Shown piece by piece: positions 11,021 through 47,298 of a stretch of DNA of 64,000 nucleotides. The first letter of the stretch is position 1. The number at the start of each line of letters is the position of its first letter. The position numbers were made by a program, and so were the translations under genes. The notes under the pieces are model-generated. The model was not told the DNA's origin. It saw only the letters and a program-made list of their open reading frames with translations, and searched no databases. The stretch is taken from positions 164,287 through 228,286 of the IMG/VR virus record IMGVR_UViG_3300032242_002041; one strand, 5' to 3'.

Positions 11021-11051
11021 TGTATAACCTAGATTAATTAACAATACTAGT

Positions 11052-21059: not shown

Positions 21060-23717
21060 TTACCACTCAAATAAAGTTTGGAAGGTATTTTCGGTGTTAG
21101 TAGCTGCCGCTAGATCCCATTCCAACACACCTAACAAATTGTCTAATTTTTGATCTACCACTGTGGCTTCCATTTCGCTGTCATCAAATGGTAGTTCTTT
21201 AAACCACGTAGGAAGATGTGTTTCATCAGTAGGATAACCTATTGACGTCCAGCCCAGTGGGTTTGCTTTAAGTTTGCAAACAATAGTTTTCATGCCATCT
21301 ACAATTTGCATACTATACTTGTCACTGTTCATACGACGCAAATTGTTCCAGTTAAGTGCGGCACGGACATGTCCTGGCATGTTGGCTTTGCCTAGGCGTT
21401 CTTCTTCCTTGCCATATTTGGTCAAGTTGTTTACACGCTTAGGACTACCCTTTTCCCAACCTGGACGTTCTTTGAACTTGTACTTGAACTCGCGAATCTT
21501 TTCAATGATTTCTTCACGACTTGTGCCAATTAGTACCTCATCAAGAATTTGACTTAGGAATTCTTGAATAACCTTAGGAGTATCACTACGCTTGAGATCT
21601 AATCCCATGGCTTTTACTTTACCCGGTGATCCGTGTGTGTCTACACGCTTGTTTTCTTTGTCGTAGTACATGACAGCATACCGCTTTTTAGTAATAAACA
21701 AGCCTTTACTGGCAACAATCTCACGTCCACCTTTAATAACATCGCCCATCTCCCTAGGCACGTGAAATGCTTGTTCCATAAAACCTGGAAAGCTATCGTT
21801 AACTTGATCAGCAATACTGTTATACAGTCGAACGGCAATTTCACGACTCCAGGTCATGTTGCCTGCTTCTATTTCTTTTTGTAGTACAGGATACGCTGTA
21901 AAATAACACGAGTCTGTATCACCATATATAATTGCCTCGCCTACGTGATCATACACACCTGTGATACATTCGTTCACATACGCATCCATATGCCGGGCAA
22001 TTGCACGACCAGTAAGAGTTGTGGATTGACCAATACGCTTATCAAAGAAACGGCAACCAGGATTAAGAATAGCACCATAGAGACTGTTGAGGTTAATCTT
22101 TTTAACAAGTTGACGCTTGTCCCAGTATTCTTCATCTTCTGCATTTTTACACTCCTTTAATCGGGCCTGCATCTCTTTACGTTCAGCATACCAACGTTTT
22201 AACAATCCTGGAATAACAGCTTCCTTCTCATAGGTAAAGATAGTACCGTTAGCGGTAATCATCCAAGGATGATTGCTATCAAAAATTATCTTCCATATGT
22301 CAGCGGCACTGTGTACACTCTCCTCACCGTCTTTCCAGTCAATGGTAATTTCTGTACCTACTTCGGTATTCATGACTGCTTCGTATTCTAAACTTCCAAA
22401 CAGGCCTTCCCATGCCCCGGCAAATGAGCTACCTGCTCGCATCTTATCACCAATATAGCGTTCAGTCATTATAGGTCGGAGTTGTCCTACAATAGTTTCA
22501 GGTCCCATATTAAGTGCTCTAATAGCACTTGGATACAGTGAGTTAATATCTATACTACCTACATACTCGTGTATGCCTTTTTTTGGAAACGCAACATAGG
22601 CACCTGCGGCTTGTGTGTCTTCATCCGAATAGCGTTCCTTGCGATTAGGCACAACCATACCACGCTCGTGTGCTTCGTTAATAATTGCTTGTTCTGTTAC
22701 AGCTACAGCACCCATTGTAGTTTGTAGTAACACTGTGTTTTCGTGTGCTAGGGTATTGGCCAAATCCAAGAACTTTAATTTCTTATCCAGCTTGGCAAGA
22801 ATCATTGTGTCCTGACGGTTATATTCGATAAACTTTTTAAAGTTTTGATTGTACAATTGATCAAGTGTGCCTTCAAACACCGTCTTGGTTTCTTGTAACT
22901 CATATTCAGCAATAGCATCCAAACTATAACTATGGCGTTCTTCGTATGTGTACTTGCGATACAGTTGCATATAGTCCATATGCACACGACCAATTAAATC
23001 GTAGGTTTCGTTTTCTGCACCAAAGCGTTCGAACATACGTTTCTTAGGGTACTGGTTCCACAGGCAAAATCTGCGTGTATCATCCTTGCTGAGAATACGT
23101 GTAACACGATTTACTGTGTAGGGTATATCATAACCCTCTGAGTTCCAACCGGATAGTGCATCGGCGTCTTCGATAAGGTCCAAGAATGTTTTTAACATTT
23201 CATCTTCACGCTCAAAGACGACGCAGTTTTCAAACTCCTTGGCAATTTCGTTCGCAGTTGCACGACTCATATGCTTGGGCGGAACAACTAGCGTGACCAT
23301 TTGATCGAGCCATTGCAAGTAGACCGAGATTGCAGTGATAGCATTAAATGGATCTGTTGTTGGTGAGAAACCACGTTCGGGATCAAAGTCTACTTCAATG
23401 TCAAAGAATGCTACGTTTAACTTGGGACCATCTTGCCCTTTGTAGTTTTCTTCTAAGCACCGAAAGATTGGATTGATATCACTCTCATACAGTTGCTTGC
23501 CTGACTGTATGCGAATTTCTTTACGAAACTCTTTGTTGTTGCGTGTGCTGAATCTACTGACAGGTGTGCCGAATAGGCTTAGGAATTTACCACGAGGATC
23601 CTCGTAATAAAATACATAGTTGGCCGGATATTCTTGATAGGTTCTACGTCCATCCTTCCGTTCAACTACATGAATACGATCGTGTTCACGATCAAATAGT
23701 GCATCTACATAACTCAA
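21060..23717 (-). CDS. polB: family B DNA polymerase
   Basis: FFDIEV ExoI, WNSEGYD, DINSLYPS, KINLNSLYG, YGDTDS, KKRY; TTG start. Confidence 0.97.
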   Translation of the reverse strand: MSYVDALFDREHDRIHVVERKDGRRTYQEYPANYVFYYEDPRGKFLSLFGTPVSRFSTRNNKEFRKEIRIQSGKQLYESDINPIFRCLEENYKGQDGPKLNVAFFDIEVDFDPERGFSPTTDPFNAITAISVYLQWLDQMVTLVVPPKHMSRATANEIAKEFENCVVFEREDEMLKTFLDLIEDADALSGWNSEGYDIPYTVNRVTRILSKDDTRRFCLWNQYPKKRMFERFGAENETYDLIGRVHMDYMQLYRKYTYEERHSYSLDAIAEYELQETKTVFEGTLDQLYNQNFKKFIEYNRQDTMILAKLDKKLKFLDLANTLAHENTVLLQTTMGAVAVTEQAIINEAHERGMVVPNRKERYSDEDTQAAGAYVAFPKKGIHEYVGSIDINSLYPSAIRALNMGPETIVGQLRPIMTERYIGDKMRAGSSFAGAWEGLFGSLEYEAVMNTEVGTEITIDWKDGEESVHSAADIWKIIFDSNHPWMITANGTIFTYEKEAVIPGLLKRWYAERKEMQARLKECKNAEDEEYWDKRQLVKKINLNSLYGAILNPGCRFFDKRIGQSTTLTGRAIARHMDAYVNECITGVYDHVGEAIIYGDTDSCYFTAYPVLQKEIEAGNMTWSREIAVRLYNSIADQVNDSFPGFMEQAFHVPREMGDVIKGGREIVASKGLFITKKRYAVMYYDKENKRVDTHGSPGKVKAMGLDLKRSDTPKVIQEFLSQILDEVLIGTSREEIIEKIREFKYKFKERPGWEKGSPKRVNNLTKYGKEEERLGKANMPGHVRAALNWNNLRRMNSDKYSMQIVDGMKTIVCKLKANPLGWTSIGYPTDETHLPTWFKELPFDDSEMEATVVDQKLDNLLGVLEWDLAAATNTENTFQTLFEW

Positions 23718-23801: not shown

Positions 23802-24875
23802 TCAGTTAAAATTTCCTTCAAACCATGTGTCCGGAAGTAACTTTGCCTGGTTAATTAAATCTAATGCTATAATTTTTTCTGGATGTAAATTATTAAAAAC
23901 ATCGTGAGTTTTAAATTCATGTTTATCCCAGGTATTCCAATTGGTCAGTCGAGAGTATTCAACTCGATCAACATTGTATAGCTTGCACAGACTGTAAAAT
24001 TCAAGAATTTCTCGAAAGTTAGATTGTTGCACAATCATTCGAGTATTAAACTTGAATCCTACTGCCTCTTTTTTATTTTTTAAAAATTCCAAAGACCTTA
24101 AAATGTCTGGCCACTGGCCACCGCGTCTAATTTTTTCATATGTATCGGGTCTAGCTGCATCAACTGATATAGTTACATTACTAATTGCTGATTCTATGTG
24201 TTTGACTCTATGCCAATTTTTTTCAGCCAATAAGCCATTACTGTGTAAACTTATTGCTATGTTTGGAAAGTCTTTTAAATTTAATAGTCCCAAAAAACTT
24301 TGTATCATAGGACTAGAAAAAACTTCTCCAGCGCCACTGGTTACTAAGTGTATACGTTGACTAGATGGTTTTGAAAAAATATTTTGAAAGATACGTTGAC
24401 TAATTTCTTCTTGTCTAGCTATATCTTCCTCACTGATTTTGGTTACCTTTGTTCTACAACTAGGACAACTAAGATTGCAGGTAGAATCAACATTTAACGC
24501 AATTTCGTAAGGCATGTCATGTAGACTGGCATCTTCGATTTGCCGAGCTACATTTAACGGAAGAGTGTCCGCGGTGTTTAAATTGCCATTGATTATTAAT
24601 GCACATTGATTCTCGTCGCAATAATCATAAGTGCCATCTATAATGCTTTGTCTGATGCGTTGTGCTTTTGGAGACGACAGCATCTGTTCCAGTGTTTCGG
24701 TTAAAATATTTCCAATTCTGGTATCGCCCCAACCGGGACAGGGGCAAAGATGAACTTCGCCTATGACACTGATGTGTATGTTTATAAACGGACTAAGACA
24801 AAAGTAACCTTTAAGATTCTTAGGAGGAAACTTTTTCTTATCTATAAACACCACCGGAACAGCTACAGAGTTCAA
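23802..24875 (-). CDS. radical SAM protein with N-terminal SPASM/twitch-like domain
   Basis: FCLSPF..CPC..YCDENQC, CNLSCPSC, GAGEVF. Confidence 0.85.
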   Translation of the reverse strand: MNSVAVPVVFIDKKKFPPKNLKGYFCLSPFINIHISVIGEVHLCPCPGWGDTRIGNILTETLEQMLSSPKAQRIRQSIIDGTYDYCDENQCALIINGNLNTADTLPLNVARQIEDASLHDMPYEIALNVDSTCNLSCPSCRTKVTKISEEDIARQEEISQRIFQNIFSKPSSQRIHLVTSGAGEVFSSPMIQSFLGLLNLKDFPNIAISLHSNGLLAEKNWHRVKHIESAISNVTISVDAARPDTYEKIRRGGQWPDILRSLEFLKNKKEAVGFKFNTRMIVQQSNFREILEFYSLCKLYNVDRVEYSRLTNWNTWDKHEFKTHDVFNNLHPEKIIALDLINQAKLLPDTWFEGNFN

Positions 24876-26943: not shown

Positions 26944-27655
26944 CTTTAATCCAGTCGTCGGGAACTACACCGTGTTTTTCAACAAACAGCTCGTGCAGTT
27001 TTTTTGGAGTAATTTTGTATTTTTTGGCTATAGACTTCATCATGTGATCTATAGCATCGTAGCTGTAGGGATGGCGAAGATCTTTTTCAAGATCATCAAC
27101 ACTGCCTTCTTTTAATGGAATAACCTTGACATCTTTATCATACCGTTTCCAAGGTGTAAAGTTTTTGTTAGTTCTAATCGTATCAAAGTCAGCAACATAT
27201 ACACCGCCTGACTTGTTCCAGTCAGCACCGCCAACAAATTTCATGGACACACGGTCTCCTAACTTGTGCATGTCAGGGATTTGTATAGCCACATTCATAA
27301 CAAAGTTTTTATTGTTAGTTAAATCAGCATAACGGCTAGCTAGTTCGTTAGGAATATCAATAGTAACTGTATAGTTTTGTCGTAAGAAGTGCTGGGCCAA
27401 TTGCCTATATCTCTTTAATACCTGCGCCTGATTACTACTGTGATTTAACGCATAGGTAACTTCTAAATAAATGTGACGGCATTTGAATTGTTCGGCTATA
27501 GATTGAATGGTGTCAATGTCTTTGAACTGGTTGACAATCAAAGTTTTTTTGCCGTAGGCAGCAGTCCTCTCAACTTCAGGACCGATGATATAATCGGGTC
27601 TATTGCCGGTTGGATGCACATTTTTTGTGCTGGTAGTAAAGTCACTGGCTCTCAT
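26930..27655 (-). CDS. putative virion internal protein carrying a paralogue of 16927..17442
   Basis: MRASDF leader; GPEVERTAAYGKKTLIV..HIYL..GVY..FTPWKRYDKD; LKE boundary. Confidence 0.7.
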   Translation of the reverse strand: MRASDFTTSTKNVHPTGNRPDYIIGPEVERTAAYGKKTLIVNQFKDIDTIQSIAEQFKCRHIYLEVTYALNHSSNQAQVLKRYRQLAQHFLRQNYTVTIDIPNELASRYADLTNNKNFVMNVAIQIPDMHKLGDRVSMKFVGGADWNKSGGVYVADFDTIRTNKNFTPWKRYDKDVKVIPLKEGSVDDLEKDLRHPYSYDAIDHMMKSIAKKYKITPKKLHELFVEKHGVVPDDWIKDAHK

Positions 27656-30600
27656 TCAACACCAAGGATCTGTTGAACCTGATTGACATAAGCACTAACA
27701 TCACTGGTGCCAATTTCGTCTACGTCACCTACATTGTATGCCACTTCCTCAATGGCCTGTGTGACTTTATCTAGCCCAAATTCCATTATCAAATCAGTGT
27801 GCGCCACTAGGATACGCCTGATAATGGCGATCTCAACGGCTTCGCTACTGGTTGAATTTTCGTCCTCGACCAAGTCTTGTTCAAGTCGATTGATCAGTTT
27901 GGAAACTGTTGTTTCAAAGGACTGTATGCTGGGTTTACCCAATCGAGCCTGCTCAATGGCAGCTTCTTCGCTATCGCCACGTCGTGTGATGCTGACCATT
28001 CGAGTTTGAGGATTGTAATAGACCACATAGCCGCGGATCACACTTTTCTGTGGAATAGTAGTACCGGGCATTTCAAATTCTTCTGTGACTTTGTCCTCAA
28101 ATGGCAAATACCAGAACCAGTTTTGGAAACCACCTGGGTTGGTATCATAGTCCATATGCGCACGATTACGAGCACCAGCCATCATACGTTTGAACTCATT
28201 TTCTGCGCCATGTAGTTCAGCAATGTTTTCTAGCTCGTCGTACAGTTGACCAGCAAGAAAACTGTCCCTGTGACGTTCAATTTTAGGAGCCAGGCGGCGA
28301 TAAACTCTAGCCATTTCTGCTCGAACATCTGTAACAGTTTCGGCTACGCCTTGCTTGCGCTCGTAGTCACGAATGATGTCAGCCCGCATATTAGGATTAC
28401 GTTCAATAGCCCGTAGCACTGCCTCGGGATAACGTGCAGGTTGTTTTGCTTTAACTGCTATGTGAGCATCTGGCATGTCATTCCATTCACCATCATCATA
28501 ATCATCACTTTCGTTCTTGGGTTTGACATGATGTTTTTTCATGTTGATTGCAATAGCAGCCTGCTGTGCGGCATTGGCGGCTTCCTCAAAGTCATCTCGA
28601 GGATTCATGACAACCGAACGAGATTGAGGTTGATTAACTGATTTTGCTGTCGGAGATTGATTAATGGTTTGAGCTTGTGAGCCGGCCGCATTTCTATGAC
28701 CAATTGCACCAATAATACTATTAACATCATTACTGCCCTGCATACCGGCTGTATTTTGTAATATTTTCCATACCGCTTGTTTATTACTTGCGTTACCTAG
28801 TGCTGACATTAAATCATTTTGATTTTGAATTTTACCAGACTGAATTTGTTGTATAACAGCGGTAGGATTGACTACACTAGGACCACTGCTTTGTGCCTGA
28901 GCCGCACCGGCGCCGCCCAAGGCCATGGCACCTGCTAGGGCTGCACCACCTAATGCTGATTTCCAGCCTTCATCCAGATCAATATCAGCCGGAGCAACCC
29001 ATACTGTATCGTGAGTCCATTTTGTTGGATCTTTCTTGCGCATGGCGGCCACATAGGCTTCAGCTTCTCTAGTATTCATGGGTTTGCCAATCTTATTTGT
29101 GGATTTGATACGCTTGACTTGACCGTTTTGTTTGGTATACACCGCATAGTGGTCACGTAGTCCTGCGGCCCCACTTCCACCCCAATTGCCTTCCTTGACT
29201 GGTGTGTCTTGTTGAGGTGCTGGTTTTAGCAGTGTGCGATACTGTTGTTGAAATGCCGCTTTGCTCATACCATATGCAGTATAAAACTGGCGCTCATTCA
29301 TATGTTCTACGTCTTGACGCATGATATCTATATCACTCAAACTGTCGCTTTCATCTAACTCGTCGTACCAATCATCTTCTTCTTGTTTGTCAGCATACTG
29401 GTTGTATTCAACATCACTCAGGTGCATGCTGTGTTTACCGTGATTGTACAAGTCGACAATAACAAATGTTCCACTTGGACTGAGTTCATAGATCTCGCCA
29501 GTCTTGCCTTCAAATTCGTTGGGTGCTGTAACAATGATAGGATCACCCGGGTGTAATCGGTTAGCAGATTCGTCAATGTTTAATAAATCAAATTCATCTT
29601 CTGGATTAGGAACTGGTAGTGTCTGAGATTTAATCTGAGGAGCGGCAGGCTTGGCCTTAGGTTTAGATTTGGATTTGGAAGGTGCAACATCTAAATCACT
29701 AAACGGAGCCTGCACACGCGGAGTCTGTTGTTTTTTGGTCGTGGTCAAATTATCCTGATCTATGTTTAATGCCTGTGCGGCCTGTGCCGGCAGTGAGTTT
29801 ATTTGAGTTCGTAATTTTGCTATTTCGGCCTTGACATTATCTGATGGTGGCTGTTGTTGTAATTGATTAATTTGCATTTTAAGATCTTGTAGTTCTTTTT
29901 CAACTCCTGGATCTGCACCAGGCGCAATGATTGTTGTGGGCTCTGGGGTTATTGTCTGTGGTGTTGTCTTGGCTGCTTGTTTAGGACGTGTGGACTGTTT
30001 TGCTCCAGTCATTGATTGGATGGTGTTTTGTAAACGATCGTTAGTAGCTTGTATGCGAGCTAACTGAGCTTCAAGACTATTATTTTCAGAATCTAACCCG
30101 TCAATCTCACGCCCTTGCTCTTGGTCAAGTGATACTAATTTTTTTAAGAGTTCGTCTTGTTTAGTGTTAGCACCCTGAATAGCAGCCAACTGTTGATCAC
30201 TACGTTTTTGATGGTCCAATTCATCTTTGGCCAAAGCTGCCATAGCATTAGGAGCTGCAGGGTGCTTGGCTTGTATTTTTCTTACAGCGTTGGTGGTTTC
30301 GGCGTCGCCAAAGTTTGGATCTTCAGAATTTTTTTTTTGAGCTCGTTCTGAGACTGGGCTTATCTTAGGTTCAGCATACCCTGTCAATTTGGGCTGGAAA
30401 GGATCTGCGGGTTGTTTTAACTGTGGACGAGTGGTTACTTTTTTCTGCCCACCTAACCATAAGGCAAAATTATTACGATCAGCTAATGTTTGTAGTGCAA
30501 ATTGATTACGAGTTTGGCGGCTCATATTTTTTAATTTTAATAAAGTATGATATATTTGATTACGTGACATAGTAATTGGTTCAGGACTGTTCATCCAGCG

Positions 30601-31137
30601 GATAGTTGCAATATCAACATTGTCGTCATGTGCTTTACGCATTTGTTCGTAGGCATATTTGGCAGCAGCTACAGGAGAAATTGCGGCTGTTTGTTCTTTA
30701 ACTGTGGACTCGTATGTAGGACCAGTGTCGTCTCGACCTGCTAACCAATCAACAAAACTAGAAAAAGTCGATTTAGCTTTTCCTAACGCAGTATTGCTTG
30801 GAGGAGTAGCACCGGTTACACGTTGTTGCGGAGTAACTAAATCTGTACCAGCACGAACAGGTTGGGCGGGTGCTGGAACTTGGTCAGCTTCACCTAAGCT
30901 ACCATAGCCCATGCACTCATCTTTAATCTTGTAATAGCCGTCGCGCTCAGTTTTGCACTTTTGAAATTCTTTAACCAATGCCGCCTTAGATTCTGGAGTA
31001 GTAGCTGTTTTAGCACGAGCAACCAAGTCATCCATCTTCATAGCTAAATCGTCAATGCGACGTTGTTCTAATTGGTCAACAGCACCTTCTGCAAGGCGTC
31101 GTTCGTGATCTGTGTTAAATAGGTCTAATGCAAACAT
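27652..31137 (-). CDS. large modular putative internal virion polyprotein
   Basis: Many short modules between LxE/VxE/GVAE sites; coiled coil; KOW-like segment; internal hydrophobic helix. Confidence 0.75.
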   Translation of the reverse strand: MFALDLFNTDHERRLAEGAVDQLEQRRIDDLAMKMDDLVARAKTATTPESKAALVKEFQKCKTERDGYYKIKDECMGYGSLGEADQVPAPAQPVRAGTDLVTPQQRVTGATPPSNTALGKAKSTFSSFVDWLAGRDDTGPTYESTVKEQTAAISPVAAAKYAYEQMRKAHDDNVDIATIRWMNSPEPITMSRNQIYHTLLKLKNMSRQTRNQFALQTLADRNNFALWLGGQKKVTTRPQLKQPADPFQPKLTGYAEPKISPVSERAQKKNSEDPNFGDAETTNAVRKIQAKHPAAPNAMAALAKDELDHQKRSDQQLAAIQGANTKQDELLKKLVSLDQEQGREIDGLDSENNSLEAQLARIQATNDRLQNTIQSMTGAKQSTRPKQAAKTTPQTITPEPTTIIAPGADPGVEKELQDLKMQINQLQQQPPSDNVKAEIAKLRTQINSLPAQAAQALNIDQDNLTTTKKQQTPRVQAPFSDLDVAPSKSKSKPKAKPAAPQIKSQTLPVPNPEDEFDLLNIDESANRLHPGDPIIVTAPNEFEGKTGEIYELSPSGTFVIVDLYNHGKHSMHLSDVEYNQYADKQEEDDWYDELDESDSLSDIDIMRQDVEHMNERQFYTAYGMSKAAFQQQYRTLLKPAPQQDTPVKEGNWGGSGAAGLRDHYAVYTKQNGQVKRIKSTNKIGKPMNTREAEAYVAAMRKKDPTKWTHDTVWVAPADIDLDEGWKSALGGAALAGAMALGGAGAAQAQSSGPSVVNPTAVIQQIQSGKIQNQNDLMSALGNASNKQAVWKILQNTAGMQGSNDVNSIIGAIGHRNAAGSQAQTINQSPTAKSVNQPQSRSVVMNPRDDFEEAANAAQQAAIAINMKKHHVKPKNESDDYDDGEWNDMPDAHIAVKAKQPARYPEAVLRAIERNPNMRADIIRDYERKQGVAETVTDVRAEMARVYRRLAPKIERHRDSFLAGQLYDELENIAELHGAENEFKRMMAGARNRAHMDYDTNPGGFQNWFWYLPFEDKVTEEFEMPGTTIPQKSVIRGYVVYYNPQTRMVSITRRGDSEEAAIEQARLGKPSIQSFETTVSKLINRLEQDLVEDENSTSSEAVEIAIIRRILVAHTDLIMEFGLDKVTQAIEEVAYNVGDVDEIGTSDVSAYVNQVQQILGVE

Positions 31138-35169: not shown

Positions 35170-36249
35170 TTAGCAGTTCCAACGACGGCGTGCCTTGCAG
35201 ATAGCTTTGTCAGGAGTTTTTGCACAGCTAATATTGTGCATCTTCATTTGACCACGACTGCGTGAGCAGTAGCTCTTGCGACGCTTGCTGGCTTTGCTAC
35301 CTTTTTTGAGCTTGGAAGGTTTAGTAGTCACAGCAGTTTGTAGTTTGCTACCAGGATGCTCACGGCGATATGTTTTGACGGCTTTCTTACTCATGCCATC
35401 TGTGCGGTCTCGATTGTTGACCTTCTGCCAGGCTTCGGTTTCCATAATAGTTGTTGTGGTTGCAAACACATACAGTTCATCATCGTCCAAGCTCTCTAGG
35501 TCTTCCCAGATCACTTCGCTATCTACGCCATTACGCTCAGCAAGAGTTTCAATAATGTTTTCGATTAAGTCAAATTCTTCAGCCAGTTCTGTGTCTTCCG
35601 CCACACCTTGCTGTCTTTGGACAGGGCTGTCTCTAAGTGCATCTCGATAAAACTCTTTGAAATCTTGTGCCAATTCTCTTGCTGACCACGCCCAAGTTTG
35701 ACGGTCCCAATCGTCTGTCATCTCAGCTTCAAGTTTAGCACCTGGTGCTCGACCACGACTAAACCCTATACGAACAGTATGTTCAATTTGTTTATTAACC
35801 AACTTTGCAAATAGTTTGCCATTGGGATTTGGATTAATTGTTACTTTATATCCGTGTCGTTCGGCAAACTGTATCGTTGGCTGTAAGAACTGGATTTTAG
35901 GATCAACAACACCAGCTTGAGGCGGAACAGCTTCCGCCACACTCTCGTTAGGCACACAGTTACGCACCTGGCCGCCATTCCGGCCTTTCTTTGTACCTTC
36001 GGCATGTTTGCCAGGCCAGCAACGAGTATAGCCATTGGCATCTTTAGCACCCTTCTTGATTTCATTGAGATTGCCATGTGTTTGACACATGCCACAGTCT
36101 TCACAGACCATTTCCATTTCTGTGCTTTCATTGTGCTTTTTCTTACCAGCACAATGAGCTCGTTGCGAGAAGCCCTTGGGGTGGCTACAGTTGATACTGC
36201 TCTTGTATTTTTGACTCCACTTTTCAGTGATAAATTCATAGGCTTTCAT
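35170..36249 (-). CDS. putative internal virion polyprotein of basic Cys-containing peptides
   Basis: MKAYEFITE leader; Lys/Cys-rich modules between xxE sites. Confidence 0.75.
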   Translation of the reverse strand: MKAYEFITEKWSQKYKSSINCSHPKGFSQRAHCAGKKKHNESTEMEMVCEDCGMCQTHGNLNEIKKGAKDANGYTRCWPGKHAEGTKKGRNGGQVRNCVPNESVAEAVPPQAGVVDPKIQFLQPTIQFAERHGYKVTINPNPNGKLFAKLVNKQIEHTVRIGFSRGRAPGAKLEAEMTDDWDRQTWAWSARELAQDFKEFYRDALRDSPVQRQQGVAEDTELAEEFDLIENIIETLAERNGVDSEVIWEDLESLDDDELYVFATTTTIMETEAWQKVNNRDRTDGMSKKAVKTYRREHPGSKLQTAVTTKPSKLKKGSKASKRRKSYCSRSRGQMKMHNISCAKTPDKAICKARRRWNC

Positions 36250-39200
36250 TCTTTGTGTTTCCTTTTCTGTCCTCTACGCATATTTAACTGCCAACGTGCC
36301 AGTTGTCCTTTACGACCTTTGGCATGACTCGCTTTTTCTAATTCAGCCATTGTAGCACCTTTGGGGATGCCGTGACGAACGCTATCGCCTGGACGACCAG
36401 GTCCTTTGCCGTCGGCAAAATTTTCTTGTAATCCTCTGACTGACATATTGTGTCCAGTGCTACGTTCTAGTTCGTTGGCACGAGCATCAGCCTGCGACCA
36501 AGGCACGTTATCCATTCTGCTGATCTCGCGTCCTAAGGTAACATCGTATATTGCCCAAGTGCCTACTCTATTGGTAGCATCCGCGGGTTGGTCAAAGTTC
36601 TGTGCCACATCTGGCTCAACATCCTTGACTGCTGTTTCTTGCTTGCGTGGTCTATAACCATAGTCGTGAGTGTCGTTTGGCAAACCCTTCATTGTCAGCC
36701 ATTTATCAAACGTTGCATCTGCTTCTTGTTTGTCAGCGGCATAGAACCGGTCCACTACACGTAGATTTACATCGCCAAGATTTACAATTTCGTAGTTGTA
36801 GTCTGTGGGCTTTTTGGTTTGAGTAATGCGCTTGGCTAACTTGGCACGTGGTGTCATAGTTGCTGGATCTTCCCAAGGGCGAACCTGGAAGCCAATGCCT
36901 TGATCCACATACTTGTCGTAGACCTGATCAGCCACTTCGCCTTTGCTCTTGCCCTTGACTATTTCCAGCGTCTTGCCAGTGTTGACATCATACACTTCCC
37001 AGTCTTGCTCACCCATGTTGACCAGCTGATATTCACCAGAGTCCAAGGCTTCACGACCATACTTGGCCCATACTCGGTTTTTAACTTCACTTTCGGGGTA
37101 ACCATTCCACTCGGCACCAGGAACTGGTTCCCACCGACCGTTGACGTTTTGATACAGTCTAAAACGCTGATTCATTTTCTTTTCTTTACCGATGGTCTTT
37201 TCGGCCCATTGTTTCTTGAGTTGTTCTGCGGTGAGTTCACCCGCGGCATATTGACTGAACAGAGCTAGTTCACTGTCGCCTTCGGGCGCTACTAACTTGT
37301 ACAACTTCTTGGCATACTCTCTGCGTTCTTCAGCAGGGTTAGCCGCCAAACTCATAGCACGGGCAAAACGCAACATGGTTGTTTGTAATTTTTCCGGATC
37401 AGCTGACTCTTCTGCTAACCAATCACCACCTGGCGATCTAAATTCAATATAGCCTTTTTGTATGTGGGCACTGGTGTACTTGCCATCGCCTACCCCTTTT
37501 TGTATTTCTTTGTGTGCTAGTTCAATCAAGCCACTCTGCATGAGTTTGATCGCACCCATAGGATCAGCACGACCGCCTTTGATGTTTTCACGGAACTTGC
37601 TCATGGCACTCTTGGTGTAGGTATTGGCTTCGCGACCAAATGACCGTAACACATACTCGTCACCCAAGAACAGGATTAATTTCAAGTAGTCAACATCGCC
37701 ACCTTTGAATGGCACACTAACGCCCATGTGCAGGCCAGTTGAGCTGTTGGTATAGGCATTACCTTCTTGAGGATTATTGGCCCAGTCACATACTTGTTGT
37801 AGTTTTTCTAATGCTGTCAACAGGGGCATAGGAGGACTTACAATTTCCAACCCAAAATCTTCACGATCATCGGGTTCTAAACTGGTATCAGGTTCTACAA
37901 TAAACTGTCCTTCTCGGCGAGTAGCTTGGTGATAACCGCTACTTACTTTAACCGGCATGTCAACGGCACTGTTCAAACTGTCACCAATTTCATCCCAATC
38001 ACGACTTCCGTCATTGCCACCGCCACCGGTCATGTAAGGCCAGTCTAAGTCATATGAATTGGCCACATCACTCATCCAGCGTAGACCCACATCATCAAAG
38101 AATCCTGAATCGTCATCAATTTGATAATTGTCGCGGAAATCATCCAGTGCGGCATCCCAGTTGGCACCTTCCTTACGTACTTCATCTGCTATTAAATCAT
38201 CCAACAAGCCTTCGGCTTCGTTTTGTGCATCCAGGTATTTGTCGTAAAGTGGGTTGGCTTCAGCATACAAGATCTGTTCTTTACTGCTTGTGAACTTAGG
38301 TGCCCGTTCGCCCGCTTGTATAATGTCATTCATTTCATCGTCGGTTAAATCCAACAACTCCAACTGTTTTTGTATTTCGTTGTCAAGATCCCAATCGCCT
38401 TCATCTACTAGAACTTTACGAATCAAGTCCTCGGCTTCTTCTCTAAAGTCTTTGTGCATTTGCTCGTCATACCACTCATAATACTGTTCGTCAAGTCCTT
38501 CTTGTAAGGCACGCTCTTGTCTAGGACTTAAATTTCCGTAGTCGCCACCACTAAAAAAGTCTATGATATCTTGGATGCTACGACAACGTTCGTCCTGATC
38601 ATAGTCAGGTTCCATTTCGTAGTCACTGTCGCCGTTGTTGCTGGTGTCACGGAAGATTAACTCTGCTTCAAACCCAGCACGTATACCCTGGGCTTCTGGA
38701 CTCCGTGCCCACTGCATTAGATTGCTTGGACTCATACGTACTTCGTCTAGTTGCTCAACTGATTCGGCTACCTTTGTTTTTTTGAACTGTGATAATTCTA
38801 AGGCTAATTTTTCAAACAGGCCATTAGGATTAGCAATCTGCGGTTGTCCTTGACTGTTGGTTTTTAATTTTAATTTGTTAGCTTCTTTGCCAACTTGACC
38901 TGGCTTGATATCTTGTGTAAGCGCCATTGAATAGCGTGGATCTCGGGCCTGTTTCCGTGTAGGGATGTATCCCGATGCTGACTCCTCTACACCTTGCTTG
39001 GCACGTTGCTTGGCACGTTTGGCACGTTGTAAGTAGTATTTTTTTAATTCTAAATCTTTTGGTGTAGCAGTTCTGATCAGATCTAAATGTTGATCCACTG
39101 GAACTTTTTCAACTTCTATTGGTTTAAGTTCGGTTACGCTGGGCACGGAAGTAAACTCTCTGTCATTGCCGCCGGGCTCAAACAAAGGACGACCATTGGC

Positions 39201-40652
39201 ATCATACCTTGGTAACTTGTGTAGGTAAACCATTTGACCGTGTCTAATTTTGCCGCTGAATAAAACCAATTGCGGATCATTGGGAAATCCAGCAGTATCA
39301 GACCCTCGTTCTGTAAGGCCCATTGCTATAGCAAAATTTTTGTCGGCTGTGGCATAAATGGCTTTTTTATTACTCTTAGGATTGCCGCCGGTGTCTTCTG
39401 CCTGTTGTGGCGTCAGTACTGGAATCTCGTTTCTAGATCCGTGCCATAGATATTCTTGTGACGCACTTTCTTTAACTTCATCAGCGTGTAAGCCTTGGGC
39501 TTGCCCTACAGCAAAGTAGTCCGGGTGTAGTCTAGCATAGTCGCGCATTAAGATACCAGCACGGGCATTGGCTTCATTTTCCCATGGTGATCCTGTTTCT
39601 CCAGCTGTTGGTCCCATACGTTGACCATCGCGTTCGTGTTGATGCTTGTGTGTAAGTTCGTGTGCCACAGTGCGCAACACATCCATGATGTGACGATGGC
39701 CCCAGGCTACTTCAAGCAAGTGTTGATTGTTGATGTAACGGCCAAAAGTTTTGTTACGCACAGACCATTCAGGATCTTTGCGTAATTTAATTGTGGGCAT
39801 CTGCTTGAGTTTTAATTCTTTAAAACAAAAGTCAATAAAATCTTTTAGTATCTCTTCGTCTGAGGGAACAGGGTCTGGTTCCGTTACGGCTTCAACTATC
39901 TCTGGAGTTCGAAATCCATACTTTACAGGAGTCTTAACTACAGTTTTTTCTTTTAAACTGAGTTCCTGATCTTTGGCTGCGTTACGAGCATCATATAATT
40001 CTTTAATCTTGCCTTGACTACGTAACATTTTAAATGCCAAATTTTCTGGTCCAAATTCGCCGTGTTGTTCAAGTCCAGTTTGGCGCATCTTTTTAATCTT
40101 TTCAGCCATACAGGTCATCTGTTTTAAGTTGCCTGATTTGATAGCACGTTCAATTTGGTGCCCTACTGACTCAAATTTGTTTCGAGTGCTGGTATCGTCT
40201 ACCACTGACTTGACACGACGCGGAACTTGAATCCAGTCATTGTTTAAGATACTGTAAATGCCTTGACTAATATGCGGAGCATCGGCATCTTGAACATATA
40301 GTTCAACATCGTATCCACCAATTGTAATATTGTGTTGTTCGTTATACTGAAACTTTTTAGCATCAAACAGTTCACGATAAACTTCGTTATCGGGCATTTT
40401 AACTACTAGGTGTAGATCGATGTCTGAATTGGGTGTGTATGTGTAAGCGGCATTGCTACCACTAATAGTTATGTCTTTGAGGTCAAGGTCTGTAACGCCC
40501 AGAAACTCGCGAAAATCTTCAGCTATTAACAATAGCTGTGCTTTAACTTCTGGCTTTAAATGCTCAGTAGAATCCCATAATCTAGGATTTAATCGATTAT
40601 TAAATTTGACGGCATCGTCAAGGTTATAGGCGTCTAATTCAAGAATATTCAT
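36246..40652 (-). CDS. multi-enzyme polyprotein: Pol-beta nucleotidyltransferase + HExxH metallopeptidase + ADP-ribosyltransferase-like + amidoligase
   Basis: GSNAAY..SDIDLH; AHELTH..WENEA; WHGS..IYAT..E; GFEAE..DTSL..EIVSP..TGLHM..IEFR; start 40652 just after TAAATA. Confidence 0.8.
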   Translation of the reverse strand: MNILELDAYNLDDAVKFNNRLNPRLWDSTEHLKPEVKAQLLLIAEDFREFLGVTDLDLKDITISGSNAAYTYTPNSDIDLHLVVKMPDNEVYRELFDAKKFQYNEQHNITIGGYDVELYVQDADAPHISQGIYSILNNDWIQVPRRVKSVVDDTSTRNKFESVGHQIERAIKSGNLKQMTCMAEKIKKMRQTGLEQHGEFGPENLAFKMLRSQGKIKELYDARNAAKDQELSLKEKTVVKTPVKYGFRTPEIVEAVTEPDPVPSDEEILKDFIDFCFKELKLKQMPTIKLRKDPEWSVRNKTFGRYINNQHLLEVAWGHRHIMDVLRTVAHELTHKHQHERDGQRMGPTAGETGSPWENEANARAGILMRDYARLHPDYFAVGQAQGLHADEVKESASQEYLWHGSRNEIPVLTPQQAEDTGGNPKSNKKAIYATADKNFAIAMGLTERGSDTAGFPNDPQLVLFSGKIRHGQMVYLHKLPRYDANGRPLFEPGGNDREFTSVPSVTELKPIEVEKVPVDQHLDLIRTATPKDLELKKYYLQRAKRAKQRAKQGVEESASGYIPTRKQARDPRYSMALTQDIKPGQVGKEANKLKLKTNSQGQPQIANPNGLFEKLALELSQFKKTKVAESVEQLDEVRMSPSNLMQWARSPEAQGIRAGFEAELIFRDTSNNGDSDYEMEPDYDQDERCRSIQDIIDFFSGGDYGNLSPRQERALQEGLDEQYYEWYDEQMHKDFREEAEDLIRKVLVDEGDWDLDNEIQKQLELLDLTDDEMNDIIQAGERAPKFTSSKEQILYAEANPLYDKYLDAQNEAEGLLDDLIADEVRKEGANWDAALDDFRDNYQIDDDSGFFDDVGLRWMSDVANSYDLDWPYMTGGGGNDGSRDWDEIGDSLNSAVDMPVKVSSGYHQATRREGQFIVEPDTSLEPDDREDFGLEIVSPPMPLLTALEKLQQVCDWANNPQEGNAYTNSSTGLHMGVSVPFKGGDVDYLKLILFLGDEYVLRSFGREANTYTKSAMSKFRENIKGGRADPMGAIKLMQSGLIELAHKEIQKGVGDGKYTSAHIQKGYIEFRSPGGDWLAEESADPEKLQTTMLRFARAMSLAANPAEERREYAKKLYKLVAPEGDSELALFSQYAAGELTAEQLKKQWAEKTIGKEKKMNQRFRLYQNVNGRWEPVPGAEWNGYPESEVKNRVWAKYGREALDSGEYQLVNMGEQDWEVYDVNTGKTLEIVKGKSKGEVADQVYDKYVDQGIGFQVRPWEDPATMTPRAKLAKRITQTKKPTDYNYEIVNLGDVNLRVVDRFYAADKQEADATFDKWLTMKGLPNDTHDYGYRPRKQETAVKDVEPDVAQNFDQPADATNRVGTWAIYDVTLGREISRMDNVPWSQADARANELERSTGHNMSVRGLQENFADGKGPGRPGDSVRHGIPKGATMAELEKASHAKGRKGQLARWQLNMRRGQKRKHKE

Positions 40653-40669
40653 GATAGTATTTACCGGGC

Positions 40670-40696
40670 AAACAAAAGCCGCTTTGATAGCGGCTT
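40670..40696 (-). terminator. rho-independent terminator
   Basis: AAGCCGCT/AGCGGCTT stem followed by a U-rich tract on the minus strand. Confidence 0.7.
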
Positions 40697-40718
40697 GTGT
40701 CATTTAAACAAAAACAGT

Positions 40719-43468: not shown

Positions 43469-44179
43469 TTATTTAGTCGGGATTATCTGCATAGTTTTTC
43501 TTATAAGGCCAGGGCGAACTAAACCGAGCATGGTTAACCACAGCATTTCGTTGTGATCAACAAAAAAGTAATCTTGGGTCCTATTAAACGGCCCTACTAT
43601 CCATGCGTTGAGCGCAGGGCTTACCCTAACAGTCTGTTGATTTAATAAAAATCCCGTTAGATGAGTCTTTTGTTCCGCGGTCAATTTGACTATTTTAAAA
43701 TAACTACGAAATTGGTGTTGAGGGTTTTTTAGTTGTATAGTATTTGGAGGACGATTAATATCTGCTCGACTGTAACTGTTACTTTCTACTCCATTGAGTT
43801 GATCTACCCGATCAATTAAAGTTAAATCGTTGGTGTAAAGGTATCCTTGGTTGGCACTTACTACTAGTTTAAAATCTACAGGTGCAGTTAACAACAGCGT
43901 TGCCAAGGTGTGTAAGTTATCAACCGTTTGGTCGGTAATTTCTTTTCTTCGCTGTCCTAGTATATGTTGACGGCCTAATACTTGTCCGGTCTTGTGCCAT
44001 CGTTGCATGGCTATGCTACGCCACTCTCGGCGACGTTCAATCGTTCGATCAATTTCGTCATGACCAAGGTCGCGCAAAGCACTGGCTTCATCCATTGTGA
44101 AACTTAGCACGTATTCAAATCGATTATGAAACAATCGATCTTTGACAACCGATTTAAATTGTTGGATCGCTTTGGTCAA
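43469..44179 (-). CDS. hypothetical protein
   Basis: 236-aa ORF downstream of clpA. Confidence 0.7.
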   Translation of the reverse strand: MTKAIQQFKSVVKDRLFHNRFEYVLSFTMDEASALRDLGHDEIDRTIERRREWRSIAMQRWHKTGQVLGRQHILGQRRKEITDQTVDNLHTLATLLLTAPVDFKLVVSANQGYLYTNDLTLIDRVDQLNGVESNSYSRADINRPPNTIQLKNPQHQFRSYFKIVKLTAEQKTHLTGFLLNQQTVRVSPALNAWIVGPFNRTQDYFFVDHNEMLWLTMLGLVRPGLIRKTMQIIPTK

Positions 44180-46430
44180 GAACTATATATCCATTTTCAT
44201 CGACTACAGGAGCCAGCATAGGAGGCTCGATTATAAAATCAATTCGATCATCAACCATGATAGCTGAAATATTGCAGTTTTCTAATCGATCAAACAAGAT
44301 CTTCTTACTCAACGGCACACGAATTAACTCGTCAATCTTACGACCTAAGGGACGAGCACCCATCTTATTGTCATAGCCCTTATCGGCTAACATATCAATA
44401 ACAGATTCCGTTAAGTTTAGCTTAATGTTCTTGTTCATTAGGCTATCTTTAAGTTCATCTACAAATTTAACAACAACTTTCTTGATAGCCAAGGTATCTA
44501 ACTTGTTAAACTTGCACACACAGTCGATACGATTGCGTAGCTCAGGCTTGAAGAACTCTTTCATGGCTTTGTCTTCACTACCGGTCTTTTCTAATGCCTG
44601 ACCGAAGCCAATGTTGTTTGACTCGTTATCACGAGCACCCAAGTTTGATGTCATGATAATGATGCAGTTCTTAAGATCTACTGTTTTACCATTGCTCGAT
44701 GTAATACGAGCTTCGTCTAACATTTGTAACATAATGTTAACAACGTCGGGGTGAGCCTTTTCAATTTCGTCAAACAACAAGATACTAAATGGATTCTTAC
44801 TAACATCACTAATTAACTTGCCGCCGCCTAGGTTACCATCTTCAAAGCCTACGTAGCCTGGAGGCGCACCAATCAAGCCCGAAACTGTATGACGTTCTTG
44901 ATACTCACTCATATCGTATTTTAACAACTTCATATCTAAGTGTTCGCCTAGCAACTTGGCTAGTTCTGTTTTGCCTGTGCCTGTTGGTCCAAGGAATAAA
45001 AAGCTGGCAATAGGACGTTTGTTGTTGCCAATGCCGGAGAAATTAATGTAGACACGTTCTAAGACACGATCTACAGCCGCATCTTGTCCGTAGAGCTTTT
45101 GTTTGATGTTACTTTCCAGTTCAACAATCTTGGTTGAACGTTCGTTTTCAAGTCGATCTAAGGGAACATCAGTTACCCGACTTAGTTGTTCCATAATCAT
45201 TTCTTTGGTAATGGTTACATTGCCCAAGTCCTTGACACGTTCCTTAGCACAAGCACCGTCCAACAGATCAATTGACTTGTCTGGATTCTTACGATCATGA
45301 ATGTAACGGCCACTTAATTCAACTGCGGCTGTAATAGCATCAGTATCAATCATGACATTATGAAACTGTTCCAAACGTGGGCTAAGTCCAATAAGAATCT
45401 GTTCTGTTGTTTCTGCATTGGGCTCATCGATGCTCACACGATGGAAGCGACGCATTAAGGCGCGGTCTTTTTCAAACGACTCGTAGTATTCTTCCCAAGT
45501 AGTACTAGCAATTACTTTTAAACTGCCCTTGGTAATACTTGGCTTTAACATGTTGGCCATGTCCAAGCTACTTTGACTGCTGGCACCAGCACCTTTCATG
45601 GTATGCGCTTCATCAACAAACAAGATACAATTCTTTTTAGTTTCTAGAGCAGTAATAACTGCTTTGAACTTTTCTTCAAACTCACCGCGATACTTTGATC
45701 CAGCTAGTAATGAGCCCACTTCCAATGACCATAGTTCGTGTCCTTTAAGGAATTCTGGTACATGACCAGCGGTCATTTCCTGTGCTAGTCCTTCTACAAT
45801 AGCAGTCTTGCCTACACCGGGGTCGCCAACCATTAACACGTTGGCCTTGAACTTGCGAGCCAACACAGTAATCATTTCATCGAGCTCTGCACTACGGCCA
45901 ATCATGGGTTCAAGACGATCTTCACGGGCTAGCTTGGTAAGCTCAACACAGTGTTCTGTTAATATTTCTGTGGCCTGTTGATCCGTGAGCTTGACATCAC
46001 TTTGTTTGTAATGAGCGTTGTAAAATTCTACAAATTCAGTTTTCTTCATACCATACTTGAGTAGGAAGTAATGAGCGTGACTGTTGTTCTCAGCCATCAT
46101 GGCCAAGTATAAATCTACAGTACTAATAGTTCTGCGACCAGTAAACAAGACCTGAGTCAGTGCGCGATTAAACACACGTTCTAGAGCATTGGTTTTTTTA
46201 GGTTGCACATCTTTGTCAGTGACTAGTGCTGCCAAATTATTTAGATAGGTGTTTAATTCCATATCTAGCAAATTTACGTCAACACCAAATTTTTCCATGA
46301 CACGATGAAAAGGTTCGTGTCTAATTAGGCTCAATAGTACATGTTCAGTTAATACGTATTCGTGATGGCGATCACGTGCTAATTTAACTGCACCGTCAAC
46401 TATTTGTTCAATTTCTGGATTATTTTGCAT
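44154..46430 (-). CDS. clpA: ATP-dependent Clp protease ATP-binding subunit
   Basis: Clp N-domain, GDPGVGKT and GPTGTGKT Walker A motifs, no M-domain, IGF loop. Confidence 0.92.
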   Translation of the reverse strand: MQNNPEIEQIVDGAVKLARDRHHEYVLTEHVLLSLIRHEPFHRVMEKFGVDVNLLDMELNTYLNNLAALVTDKDVQPKKTNALERVFNRALTQVLFTGRRTISTVDLYLAMMAENNSHAHYFLLKYGMKKTEFVEFYNAHYKQSDVKLTDQQATEILTEHCVELTKLAREDRLEPMIGRSAELDEMITVLARKFKANVLMVGDPGVGKTAIVEGLAQEMTAGHVPEFLKGHELWSLEVGSLLAGSKYRGEFEEKFKAVITALETKKNCILFVDEAHTMKGAGASSQSSLDMANMLKPSITKGSLKVIASTTWEEYYESFEKDRALMRRFHRVSIDEPNAETTEQILIGLSPRLEQFHNVMIDTDAITAAVELSGRYIHDRKNPDKSIDLLDGACAKERVKDLGNVTITKEMIMEQLSRVTDVPLDRLENERSTKIVELESNIKQKLYGQDAAVDRVLERVYINFSGIGNNKRPIASFLFLGPTGTGKTELAKLLGEHLDMKLLKYDMSEYQERHTVSGLIGAPPGYVGFEDGNLGGGKLISDVSKNPFSILLFDEIEKAHPDVVNIMLQMLDEARITSSNGKTVDLKNCIIIMTSNLGARDNESNNIGFGQALEKTGSEDKAMKEFFKPELRNRIDCVCKFNKLDTLAIKKVVVKFVDELKDSLMNKNIKLNLTESVIDMLADKGYDNKMGARPLGRKIDELIRVPLSKKILFDRLENCNISAIMVDDRIDFIIEPPMLAPVVDENGYIVLDQSDPTI

Positions 46431-46506: not shown

Positions 46507-47298
46507 TTATTGATTACGGGTTTGAGCAATAGCATCCACTACGGATTCTGGAATATTTTCGGGTATTTGTGCCTGAATCCGTACAAACAAATCGCCAGCT
46601 GGCCCGGATCTTTGTCTAAGTCCCCGTTCGCGTAGTCTAAACATAGTTCCTGGTTGAGTTCGGGGTGGTACAGTTACACTCAGGGTGTTGCCCAAGATAT
46701 CACGAACTGGGATTTCCGCTCCCAAAATCAAATCCCAGACGCTAACGGCTTCTTCTGCAATTAAGTTAGCACCTTGTCGCTCCCAACGAGGATTAGGATG
46801 TATTCTAAAAGTAATCAACAAGTCCATGCCCATGGGTCCTGTTTTGGGATACTGTACTGTGTCGCCGTCGTTGATGTTTAGGGGTATTTCTATTTCTACA
46901 GTAACATTGCCTTGATGCGAACCCACGCTGATGGTTTTTCTTCCACCCTCGGCTACATCTTGTAAGGTTATCCATAGGCTCATGCGGGCCTGTTGTGTAC
47001 GTTGTTGATGTGGATGATGAAATTGTGCTCCAAACGCATTGAATATGTTTTCAAAATCAAACGATCCGCCATTGGTTCTAAAACTAAACCCGTGTTGCCC
47101 AAATGGATTAGGATTATCGTGTTGGGCACGTTGTTGTGGATCGCTTAAGGTGCGATATGCCTGTTCTATTTCTTGGAATTTGTTTTTGTCGCCGCCTTTA
47201 TCAGGGTGATGCTGACTGGCCAATCGACGATAAGCTCGTTTGATTTCTTCAGAGGAAGCGGTTTGATTAACGCCTAGTGTTTGATATGGATTTTGCAT
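46507..47298 (-). CDS. dnaJ: DnaJ/CbpA-like co-chaperone
   Basis: J-domain with HPD, G/F region, C-terminal domain, no Zn finger. Confidence 0.88.
   Translation of the reverse strand: MQNPYQTLGVNQTASSEEIKRAYRRLASQHHPDKGGDKNKFQEIEQAYRTLSDPQQRAQHDNPNPFGQHGFSFRTNGGSFDFENIFNAFGAQFHHPHQQRTQQARMSLWITLQDVAEGGRKTISVGSHQGNVTVEIEIPLNINDGDTVQYPKTGPMGMDLLITFRIHPNPRWERQGANLIAEEAVSVWDLILGAEIPVRDILGNTLSVTVPPRTQPGTMFRLRERGLRQRSGPAGDLFVRIQAQIPENIPESVVDAIAQTRNQ

Follow-up and report, generated by a model that had tools for sequence, protein, structure and literature searches.

A predicted ADP-ribosyltransferase cassette between Glu-ending linkers in a slotted polyprotein of a jumbo phage

The Alt protein of phage T4 is a stand-alone ADP-ribosyltransferase (ART) of the R-S-E class, and the motif of the T4 protease gp21 is L/I-x-E. 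The MARTX and polymorphic toxins (Rhs, CdiA) combine conserved scaffolds with exchangeable effector cassettes bounded by short conserved peptides, and MARTX cassettes are released by an embedded protease. T4 Alt is packaged in the head, and gp21 trims it at each terminus, where the sites end in Glu; the gp21 motif has been described as highly reminiscent of the giant-phage motifs, and the gp21 relative of phiKZ cuts after S/A-X-E (PMC9026906). The gp245 of SPN3US cleaves A-X-E sites and has a preference for Ser at P1′ (PMC10052503), and for phiKZ gp175 and SPN3US gp245 the DNA-packaged proteins are cut after S/A-X-E or A-X-E, at multiple sites each (PMC10052503, PMC9026906). Polyvalent proteins, in the accessible text of Iyer et al. 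2017 (PMC5512222), have variable domain architectures, with processing by metallopeptidases (MPTases) and delivery with the DNA predicted. Here we consider a polyvalent polyprotein encoded in a 64,000-nucleotide stretch, termed the window, of the IMG/VR virus record IMGVR_UViG_3300032242_002041 (positions 164,287 to 228,286). A module of predicted ART fold occupies one of three slots for exchangeable cassettes in this protein and lies between Glu-ending linkers.

A search of 5.8 billion proteins returned at least 1,655 metagenome homologues of the polyprotein. The figures given for orthologues refer to the best 120 of these at least 1,655 matches, all full-length (1223-2210 amino acids, aa), with contigs of 100-345 kb as the source of many. 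When the 120 are aligned with MAFFT, core blocks at 100% occupancy are seen to be broken by three hypervariable sites, placed on the window protein (P0001) at aa 403-573 (HS1), aa 637-650 (HS2) and aa 1426/1427 (HS3). Empty and filled alleles exist for each slot; in P0001 the ART fills HS1, and HS2 and HS3 are empty. The gene and the features of HS1 are as follows, in window coordinates.

36246..40703, minus strand: open reading frame (ORF) of the polyvalent polyprotein, 1485 aa, P0001, from the ORF call.
39471..39485, minus strand: resident left linker A-D-E-V-K, aa 407-411, present in empty-site alleles.
39459..39470, minus strand: left E-S-A-S, aa 412-415, start of the linker belonging to the cassette, with GAA AGT common to loci L006 and L054.
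38985..39470, minus strand: ART cassette in HS1, aa 412-573, 162 aa, delimited as an indel against empty alleles and assigned from an AlphaFold2 (AF2) model and ART-fold matches.
39002..39450, minus strand: stretch 91.3% identical in DNA to the ART cassette of L054, 449 nucleotides (nt) without gaps.
38998..39029, no strand assigned: tandem repeat of TTGGCACGTT, three copies, coding basic A-K-[RQ] repeats, from a DNA repeat search.
38973..38984, minus strand: right E-S-A-S, aa 574-577, the resident copy, which follows G-V-E of the cassette, from the comparison with an empty allele.

The original prediction held that the ART module is bracketed by a duplicated E-S-A-S junction and that this is the footprint of a cassette inserted at a cleavage linker, suggesting how modules are gained and lost. 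At HS1 the flanks are joined directly in 51 of the 120 orthologues, 16 of which read exactly A-D-E-V-K-E-S-A-S-G-Y and 35 of which have an even shorter linker. Inserts of 54-359 aa, of many unrelated kinds and more than 20 families, are present in 69; they include sigma-70 region 4 and signal-peptide or lipobox modules, and nearly all are closed by x-x-E followed by [S/G]-A-S-G-Y. Both the contiguous VKE-SASGY flanks (the 16 exact cases) and the other domains at this site that the prediction implied are thus to be found. The ART itself is far from fixed here. It occurs at HS1 in only four of the 120 and at the second slot in one more; when segments of P0001 are mapped, the ART segment is missing from all orthologues but P0002, P0015, P0061 and P0021. 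In P0003, the nearest neighbour of P0001 at 93% identity, HS1 is empty.

The gain and loss of modules envisaged for this site is borne out by the family as a whole. On a tree of the 120 sequences, built from 625 core columns around HS1, the content of this slot changes at least 55 times, an approximate count, and the four ART carriers require 4 changes on the HS1-flank tree. Greedy clustering gives about 26 cassette families across the slots, few of them named in Pfam (Sigma70_r4, ParB_N, DUF6934, DUF3553 and DUF6886, the last being the ART). Stacked cassettes are seen in some orthologues, and related cassettes occupy different slots: the ART is at HS1 in P0001 and at HS2 in P0021 (62.5% identity), and there are further pairs in P0014-HS1 and P0033-HS2 (95%), P0061-HS1 and P0019-HS3 (88%) and P0007-HS1 and P0011-HS3 (80%). 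From one part of the gene to another, nucleotide identity ranges from 0.52 to 0.96. The indels are unlikely to be assembly artefacts, as numerous separate metagenome samples (JGI, ENA and Logan) contributed the 120 orthologues.

Sigma-70 region 4 is a cassette in P0018, P0023, P0045 and others, and is also found as a separate small gene directly downstream of the polyprotein in L006 (L006:10992-11723). This distribution hints at an exchange of modules between the polyprotein and the genes beside it.

The E-S-A-S peptide is present at both borders of the ART, in the contexts V-K-E-S-A-S then Q-E-Y-L-W-H-G-S on the left and G-V-E-E-S-A-S then G-Y-I-P on the right. The codons are, as originally stated, different: GAA AGT GCG TCA on the left and GAG TCA GCA TCG on the right, with four of four codons unlike and 6 of 12 bases in agreement. 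A codon alignment of the window gene with the nearest empty allele, L005, and the ART-bearing orthologue L006 distinguishes the two copies. The right E-S-A-S is the resident one because L005 reads GAG TCA GCG TCG at that junction, the same as the window copy in 11 of 12 nt. The left E-S belongs to the cassette because its codons, GAA AGT, are shared with L006 and L054 and so occur in three gene contexts. Codon differences in E-S-A-S-G-Y are purely synonymous among the three sequenced alleles; the peptide is kept while codons vary, and selection therefore acts on the protein and not on the DNA. By this comparison of codons the duplicated peptide is a linker unit carried by each cassette and not an insertion scar. 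The original interpretation is supported in substance, with empty alleles placing the cassette in a linker; what does not hold is a footprint in the DNA, as the codons differ and no repeat flanks the insert.

The closest DNA relative of the cassette sits in a different gene. L054 encodes an unrelated protein of 467 aa (P0121, L054:1619-3022) with an ART at its N-terminus, and the match to it is that listed above. The ART of the orthologue L006 is only 51-72% identical in nt to the window cassette, and the backbone flanks are about 80% identical in nt to those of the nearest orthologue. An identity of 91% to an unrelated gene, as against 72% at most to orthologue ARTs, shows at the level of sequence a recent lateral transfer of the cassette between different genes. 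The notion that the cassette is compositionally foreign was rejected. Its GC content, 0.436, equals that of the gene (0.445 ± 0.03), and the cassette therefore circulates within the same gene pool. On the contig of P0122 the amidoligase-like part is a gene of its own (988 aa), and the ART gene follows two genes further downstream; the arrangement of P0121 and P0122 indicates that parts of the polyprotein are encoded as separate genes in some phages.

The name given to the module in the original prediction is supported at the level of fold. We accept it, on the basis of its model, as an ART fold of the H-Y-E type, with H421, Y450 and E516 as the putative catalytic triad, followed by a C-terminal helix. 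The AF2 model of the cassette has a predicted local distance difference test (pLDDT) value of 93.4, and about 40 of the top 50 matches from VIA-align are ART-fold proteins. Structural Z-scores are 6.9 for KptA/Tpt1, 6.1 for pertussis S1, 5.9 for an Rhs toxin and 5.6 for both Arr and diphtheria toxin; further matches are PARPs, DarT and ParT. Foldseek agrees weakly, its top matches being Arr and Tpt1. In 43 aligned homologues, which include stand-alone proteins of 140-190 aa, H421-G-S (H-G-[ST]) and Y450 (Y-A) do not vary; the presumed third catalytic position, E516, lies where a strand begins and is occupied by E or Q. Searches of Pfam and NCBIfam returned nothing for the ART piece of the window, and profile searches of the PDB gave no match to the module. 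Links to DUF6886 (PF21820) come from relatives: 12 of the 43 homologues match this family (best E value 1.8e-6), as does the orthologue cassette P0015:390-541 (1.1e-5), and the nearest atlas cluster to the module carries it. We infer that the cassette belongs to the uncharacterized family DUF6886, with ART activity as a prediction only. A literature search on DUF6886 found no papers.

What is common to the cassettes is the linker. At the right-hand border P1 is Glu for all three slots, in 112 of 112 cases at HS1 and 104 of 104 at HS3, and P3 is V, L, I or M in 71% of HS1, 100% of HS2 and 97% of HS3 borders. The window ART has V-K-E then S on the left and V-E-E then S on the right. Across the polyprotein family E-[SGN]-A-[ST] is enriched, with 112 sites observed against 21.5 expected. 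The ART domain also occurs in many different proteins (144 representatives), with Q-G-V-A-E then G on both sides, and in ART-bearing proteins Q-G-V-x-E is observed 157 times for 1.0 expected. Related, nearly complete jumbo-phage genomes have several genes of 450-700 aa with this linker every 50-150 aa. Eight residues ending L-F-E precede the ART of P0121.

A signal-peptide-like run comes directly after the linker Glu in 33 of the 69 filled HS1 alleles, with a lipobox in 21 of the 33. For such a signal peptide to function, a free N-terminus should be needed, and hence a cut in the linker. In P0029, P0033, P0066, P0076 and others, the linker Glu is followed at once by a stretch of the HS1 cassette that contains Lys, then by a hydrophobic run and by L-S-G-C, which resembles a lipobox.

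Which enzyme might recognize these linkers? The record encodes three T4-type head proteins: a capsid protein, a protease and a gene in the scaffold position. The prohead protease (Peptidase_S77, PF03420, E value 1.4e-25, at G000:C1:48036-48686) is also matched as the head maturation protease phrog_207 (1e-56). The traits of a candidate substrate are present, with an S77 protease gene in the same genome and borders of hydrophobic-x-Glu followed by a small residue. The ORFs of the genome contain five sites of the form [LIVM]-x-E-[SN]-A-[ST], compared to 0.88 expected, at the two ART junctions, the N-terminus of the capsid protein, the scaffold-position gene and a fibre-like protein. The capsid protein site, L-R-E then N-A-S, is 12 aa before the Pfam Gp23 match and is conserved in three related genomes. 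It is near-constant in four genomes (L-x-E then N/S-A/V-S) and the linkers differ somewhat, a comparison of covariation that is not discriminating. For Rak2, cleavage of the capsid protein has been suggested from gel mobility alone, with no site given. The linker is most likely, from its sequence, a recognition site of the T4 gp21-type (S77) prohead protease of the phage, cutting after Glu.

Taken together, we consider it probable that this is a slotted polyvalent polyprotein with recombining cassettes that bring their own linkers, processed by the prohead protease and delivered with the DNA. The protein is organized as beads on a string, its backbone made up of a nucleotidyltransferase, a zincin, the block of 63 aa, a core that resembles amidoligases and a tail of basic character. 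Effector cassettes are swapped in HS1, HS2 and HS3 when related phages, or different genes, recombine, each bringing a short copy of the linker, [V/L/I]-x-E then a small residue. A filled slot shows the linker twice, as in the duplicated E-S-A-S, because each cassette carries its own copy. Inside the capsid the prohead protease would cut the polyprotein into separate modules, and these would be delivered with the DNA, akin to T4 Alt trimmed at both ends. The remaining features of the backbone and its slots are listed here.

39948..40652, minus strand: N-terminal nucleotidyltransferase, aa 18-252, conserved core, from NTP_transf_2, phrog_36119 and an occupancy of 100%.
39495..39869, minus strand: minimal zincin metallopeptidase, aa 279-403, from invariant residues, an AF2 model of pLDDT 80.5 and weak fold matches.
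39648-39662, minus strand: H-E-x-x-H of the zincin, aa 348-352, invariant.
38796..38984, minus strand: 63-aa 'post' block between HS1 and HS2, aa 574-636, at 100% occupancy.
38754..38795, minus strand: slot HS2, aa 637-650, empty here, V-A-E then S, from the alignment.
36825..38753, minus strand: conserved core, aa 651-1293, from Pfam and alignment occupancy.
37719-37976, minus strand: amidoligase-like module (Pfam Amidoligase_2), aa 910-995, from Pfam.
36423..36446, minus strand: HS3 junction, aa 1420-1427, ending G-L-Q-E, empty here, from the alignment.
36249..36422, minus strand: conserved basic C-terminal tail, aa 1428-1485, starting N-F-A-D-G, common to many unrelated multi-module proteins.

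A more ambitious form of the idea is possible though doubtful. The recognition peptide of the capsid protease might double as a universal in-frame joint, so that any module bounded by [V/L/I]-x-E could be dropped into the three slots or into smaller carrier genes, excised in the capsid and delivered to the host, some then exposing lipoprotein signals for re-export to the envelope. If so, a large family of environmental jumbo phages would possess a plug-and-play arsenal.

Several points weigh against processing by the prohead protease and against the identity of the cassette. The structural Z-scores to ARTs are modest, 6.9 or less, no Pfam ART family matches the cassette, and the ART domain of the window itself falls below the DUF6886 threshold. 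The backbone tree from which HS1 changes were counted is blurred by recombination, hence the approximate figure, while the turnover itself is not in doubt. At 29% of HS1 borders P3 is Q, T, K or F, a poor fit to the T4 motif, and the motif count for the genome rests on five sites. About 150 kb lie between the polyprotein gene and the head-gene cluster, and it is ClpB-like and DnaJ-like genes that adjoin the polyprotein. Linker cleavage, the enzyme responsible and packaging in the virion are inferred from sequence, and an invariant zincin immediately upstream of HS1 offers a possible alternative processing enzyme.

This last point leads to the alternative that survives best, though we judge it unlikely: that the zincin of the polyprotein cuts the linkers in cis, either in the capsid or after injection, with no role for the prohead protease. 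All 120 orthologues retain unchanged the H-E-x-x-H residues H348, E349 and H352 and, beyond these, H356 and E357. HS1 directly follows the zincin domain across a linker (aa 403-411) predicted to be disordered, with pLDDT below 50. The modelled fold resembles minimal zincins and site-specific proteases, with matches to minigluzincins, IrrE/PprI, CapP, SprT/Wss1 and ArdC that are all weak, and profile searches of the PDB returned no match for the zincin. Autoprocessing by MPTases is predicted for polyvalent proteins in the accessible text of Iyer et al. 2017 (PMC5512222). However, it is the gp21 family that is characterized by a strict Glu at P1 and a hydrophobic residue at P3 (PMC10052503, PMC9026906), a specificity not usual for zincins. 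The same motif in the N-terminal region of the capsid protein also points away from a zincin acting in cis, though neither argument is decisive, and Q-G-V-A-E linkers occur in several multi-module proteins of 450-700 aa in related phages.

Are the linkers cut at all? They might be inter-domain joints that tolerate in-frame recombination, conserved for structure or through repeated recombination. The linkers flank regions of low pLDDT or helix ends in the models, and recombination breakpoints fall within a few codons of them. Four observations speak for cleavage and make an uncut joint quite improbable. The peptide is conserved while codons vary, and DNA homology is not, therefore, what is maintained. 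A flexible joint would not call for anything as specific as an invariant Glu with V, L or I two residues earlier. Where a signal peptide or lipobox comes right after the Glu, it is expected to need a free N-terminus, and the motif recurs in the N-terminal region of the capsid protein.

That the duplicated E-S-A-S is a target-site duplication, or some other DNA footprint of a mobile element, has become very hard to sustain. It would account for a peptide at both ends of the insert and for the short DNA repeat which the original prediction placed, correctly, at one border. This repeat comprises three copies of TTGGCACGTT(G/T) near the right junction, with spacings of 12 and 9, and codes for R-A-K-R-A-K-Q-R-A-K-Q in the C-terminal helix of the cassette. 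The array ends 14 nt short of the right junction; it is a local tandem at one end and does not flank the insert. Homology to L054 starts 9 nt inside the left junction and stops inside the array, so the TTGGCACGTT repeat marks the right-hand end of that homology. Closely related ARTs differ in their number of A-K-[RQ] units, P0122 having one, P0121 two and P0001 three, which suggests replication slippage at the TTGGCACGT unit. Direct DNA repeats on the two sides of the insert are absent, domain searches found no transposase, intein or homing-endonuclease signature in the cassette, its GC content matches the gene, and the same linker peptide is found on dozens of unrelated cassettes. With identical flanking DNA repeats absent, target-site duplication was rejected.

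A chance duplication around an ancestral and fixed ART can be set aside as wholly implausible: a duplicated tetrapeptide is by itself not unusual in so long a protein (19 duplicated 4-mers observed against 13.8 ± 3.7 in shuffles), but the ART is missing at the site in 116 of 120 orthologues, its match in L054 lies in another gene, and the E-S-A-S pair is significant because its two copies coincide with the exact limits of an indel of 162 aa in the comparison with orthologues.

The other parts of the polyprotein can now be described. Its true start is probably not the first ATG but Met18 (window 40650-40652), as more than 100 of the 120 orthologues begin there with M-N-I-x-E-L-D. In this N-terminus x varies (L/T/Q/E), I and E are fixed, and the sequence looks like another [I]-x-E site, five residues in. 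The M-N-I-x-E starts and the L-F-E peptide of P0121 recall the short propeptides of T4, which we take as a lead only. The nucleotidyltransferase region matches phrog_36119 (E value 1.6e-40) and, at aa 75-124, NTP_transf_2 (8e-6 when this piece is searched by itself, 1.3e-4 with the protein entire); it was the sole region matched when PHROGs were searched with the whole protein. With this domain, the invariant H-E-x-x-H zincin, the ART fold and Amidoligase_2 in one polypeptide, the protein shows the trait of polyvalent proteins. It is carried by no cultured phage among the records searched. Megablast of the gene against 50,697 phage records gave no match and tblastn gave single-domain relatives only, for the nucleotidyltransferase in cyanophages, Maribacter and Lak phages and for the amidoligase region in Atu_ph07 and RsoM2USA.

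The 'post' block (S-G-Y-I-P ... D-P-R ... A-L-T) and the 58-aa basic tail recur in many otherwise unrelated multi-module proteins, in every case behind a linker that ends in Glu. There, the block is found after G-V-A-E linkers, and the shared tail is always 53-58 aa from the C-terminus and always preceded by [L/V]-x-E, a further hint of prohead-protease sites. From this distribution the two may be shared targeting or anchoring tags.

The window derives from a 228-kb record with an estimated completeness of 66%. Judged by its genes the genome is that of a jumbo myovirus whose capsid protein and prohead protease are of the T4 type. The gp23-type major capsid protein (PF07068, E value 3e-98) is 61-65% identical to those of the jumbo myoviruses PA5oct, CBB and Vibrio phage 2.275.O, and a coiled-coil gene occupies the scaffold position. 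In a related genome that is 99% complete, the capsid-protein match L050 (G005:C1:193317-194306) contains one in-frame TAA, for which a mistake in assembly, a frameshift, an intron or a gene that is broken may be responsible.

Synteny around the polyprotein is kept among orthologues, where DnaJ-like and ClpB-like genes are followed by one resembling a cytidylyltransferase, by a gene of 300 aa and, last, by the polyprotein. The chaperone pair just upstream of the locus (window 44154-46430 and 46507-47298) comprises a ClpB/ClpA-like double-AAA protein (phrog_4871, E value 2e-234) and, next to it, a DnaJ-like protein assigned by synteny with L005 and L006. Elsewhere in the window a family-B DNA polymerase (phrog_262, 2e-195) adjoins a radical-SAM-like match (phrog_21308, 1.7e-10) at 21060-23717 and 23802-24875, and two large ORFs, 27652-31137 (1161 aa) and 8369-11044 (891 aa), are without any PHROG match.

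If the linkers are cut as proposed, the family of at least 1,655 metagenome homologues would constitute a natural slot-and-linker delivery system and would explain how giant phages diversify the proteins that they inject. There would then be a simple sequence rule for locating module borders, and with it new effector domains, in uncharacterized polyproteins; most of the approximately 26 cassette families in the 120 orthologues are without known function. DUF6886 would gain a first functional hypothesis, as an ADP-ribosyltransferase, and the long-standing idea that polyvalent proteins are processed, be it before injection or after it, becomes testable at named sites with two named candidate proteases.

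It remains to set the locus beside the systems that are already known, polyvalent proteins and the gp21-type processing of ejected proteins among them. In the portion of the literature accessible to us, the three-slot backbone, the Glu-ending linker at every cassette and the ART assignment of DUF6886 appear undescribed. The resemblance to MARTX, Rhs and CdiA is one of mechanism only, and no homology is claimed, as those are secreted bacterial toxins with unrelated motifs and proteases.

Like the polyvalent proteins in the accessible text of PMC5512222, the window protein combines a nucleotidyltransferase, an MPTase-like zincin, an ART and an amidoligase-like module in one polypeptide. Unlike those proteins as described there, it has an orthologous backbone with three fixed slots, and a Glu-ending linker that matches the prohead-protease motif brackets every cassette. 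In the Pfam search the window ART did not match the 'ART-PolyVal' family. The ejection and inner-body proteins of phiKZ and SPN3US share with it Glu-ending sites, Ser at P1′ and the presence of several sites per protein. They belong to another lineage, however, whereas the window phage groups by its capsid protein with PA5oct, CBB and Vibrio phage 2.275.O; and in those phages it is mostly N-terminal propeptides that are removed, whereas here the sites separate whole modules.

T4 Alt is the closest precedent for an ART flanked by Glu-ending cut sites. T4 and the window phage each encode an ART, a predicted one in the latter, along with a capsid protein of the gp23 type and a protease of the gp21 type (S77), and the window ART is bracketed by two [V]-x-E sites as putative cut sites. 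The differences are that the window ART is a module of about 150 aa, of predicted H-Y-E type and assigned to DUF6886, within a polyprotein of 1485 aa, and that it is exchangeable with more than 20 other cassettes.

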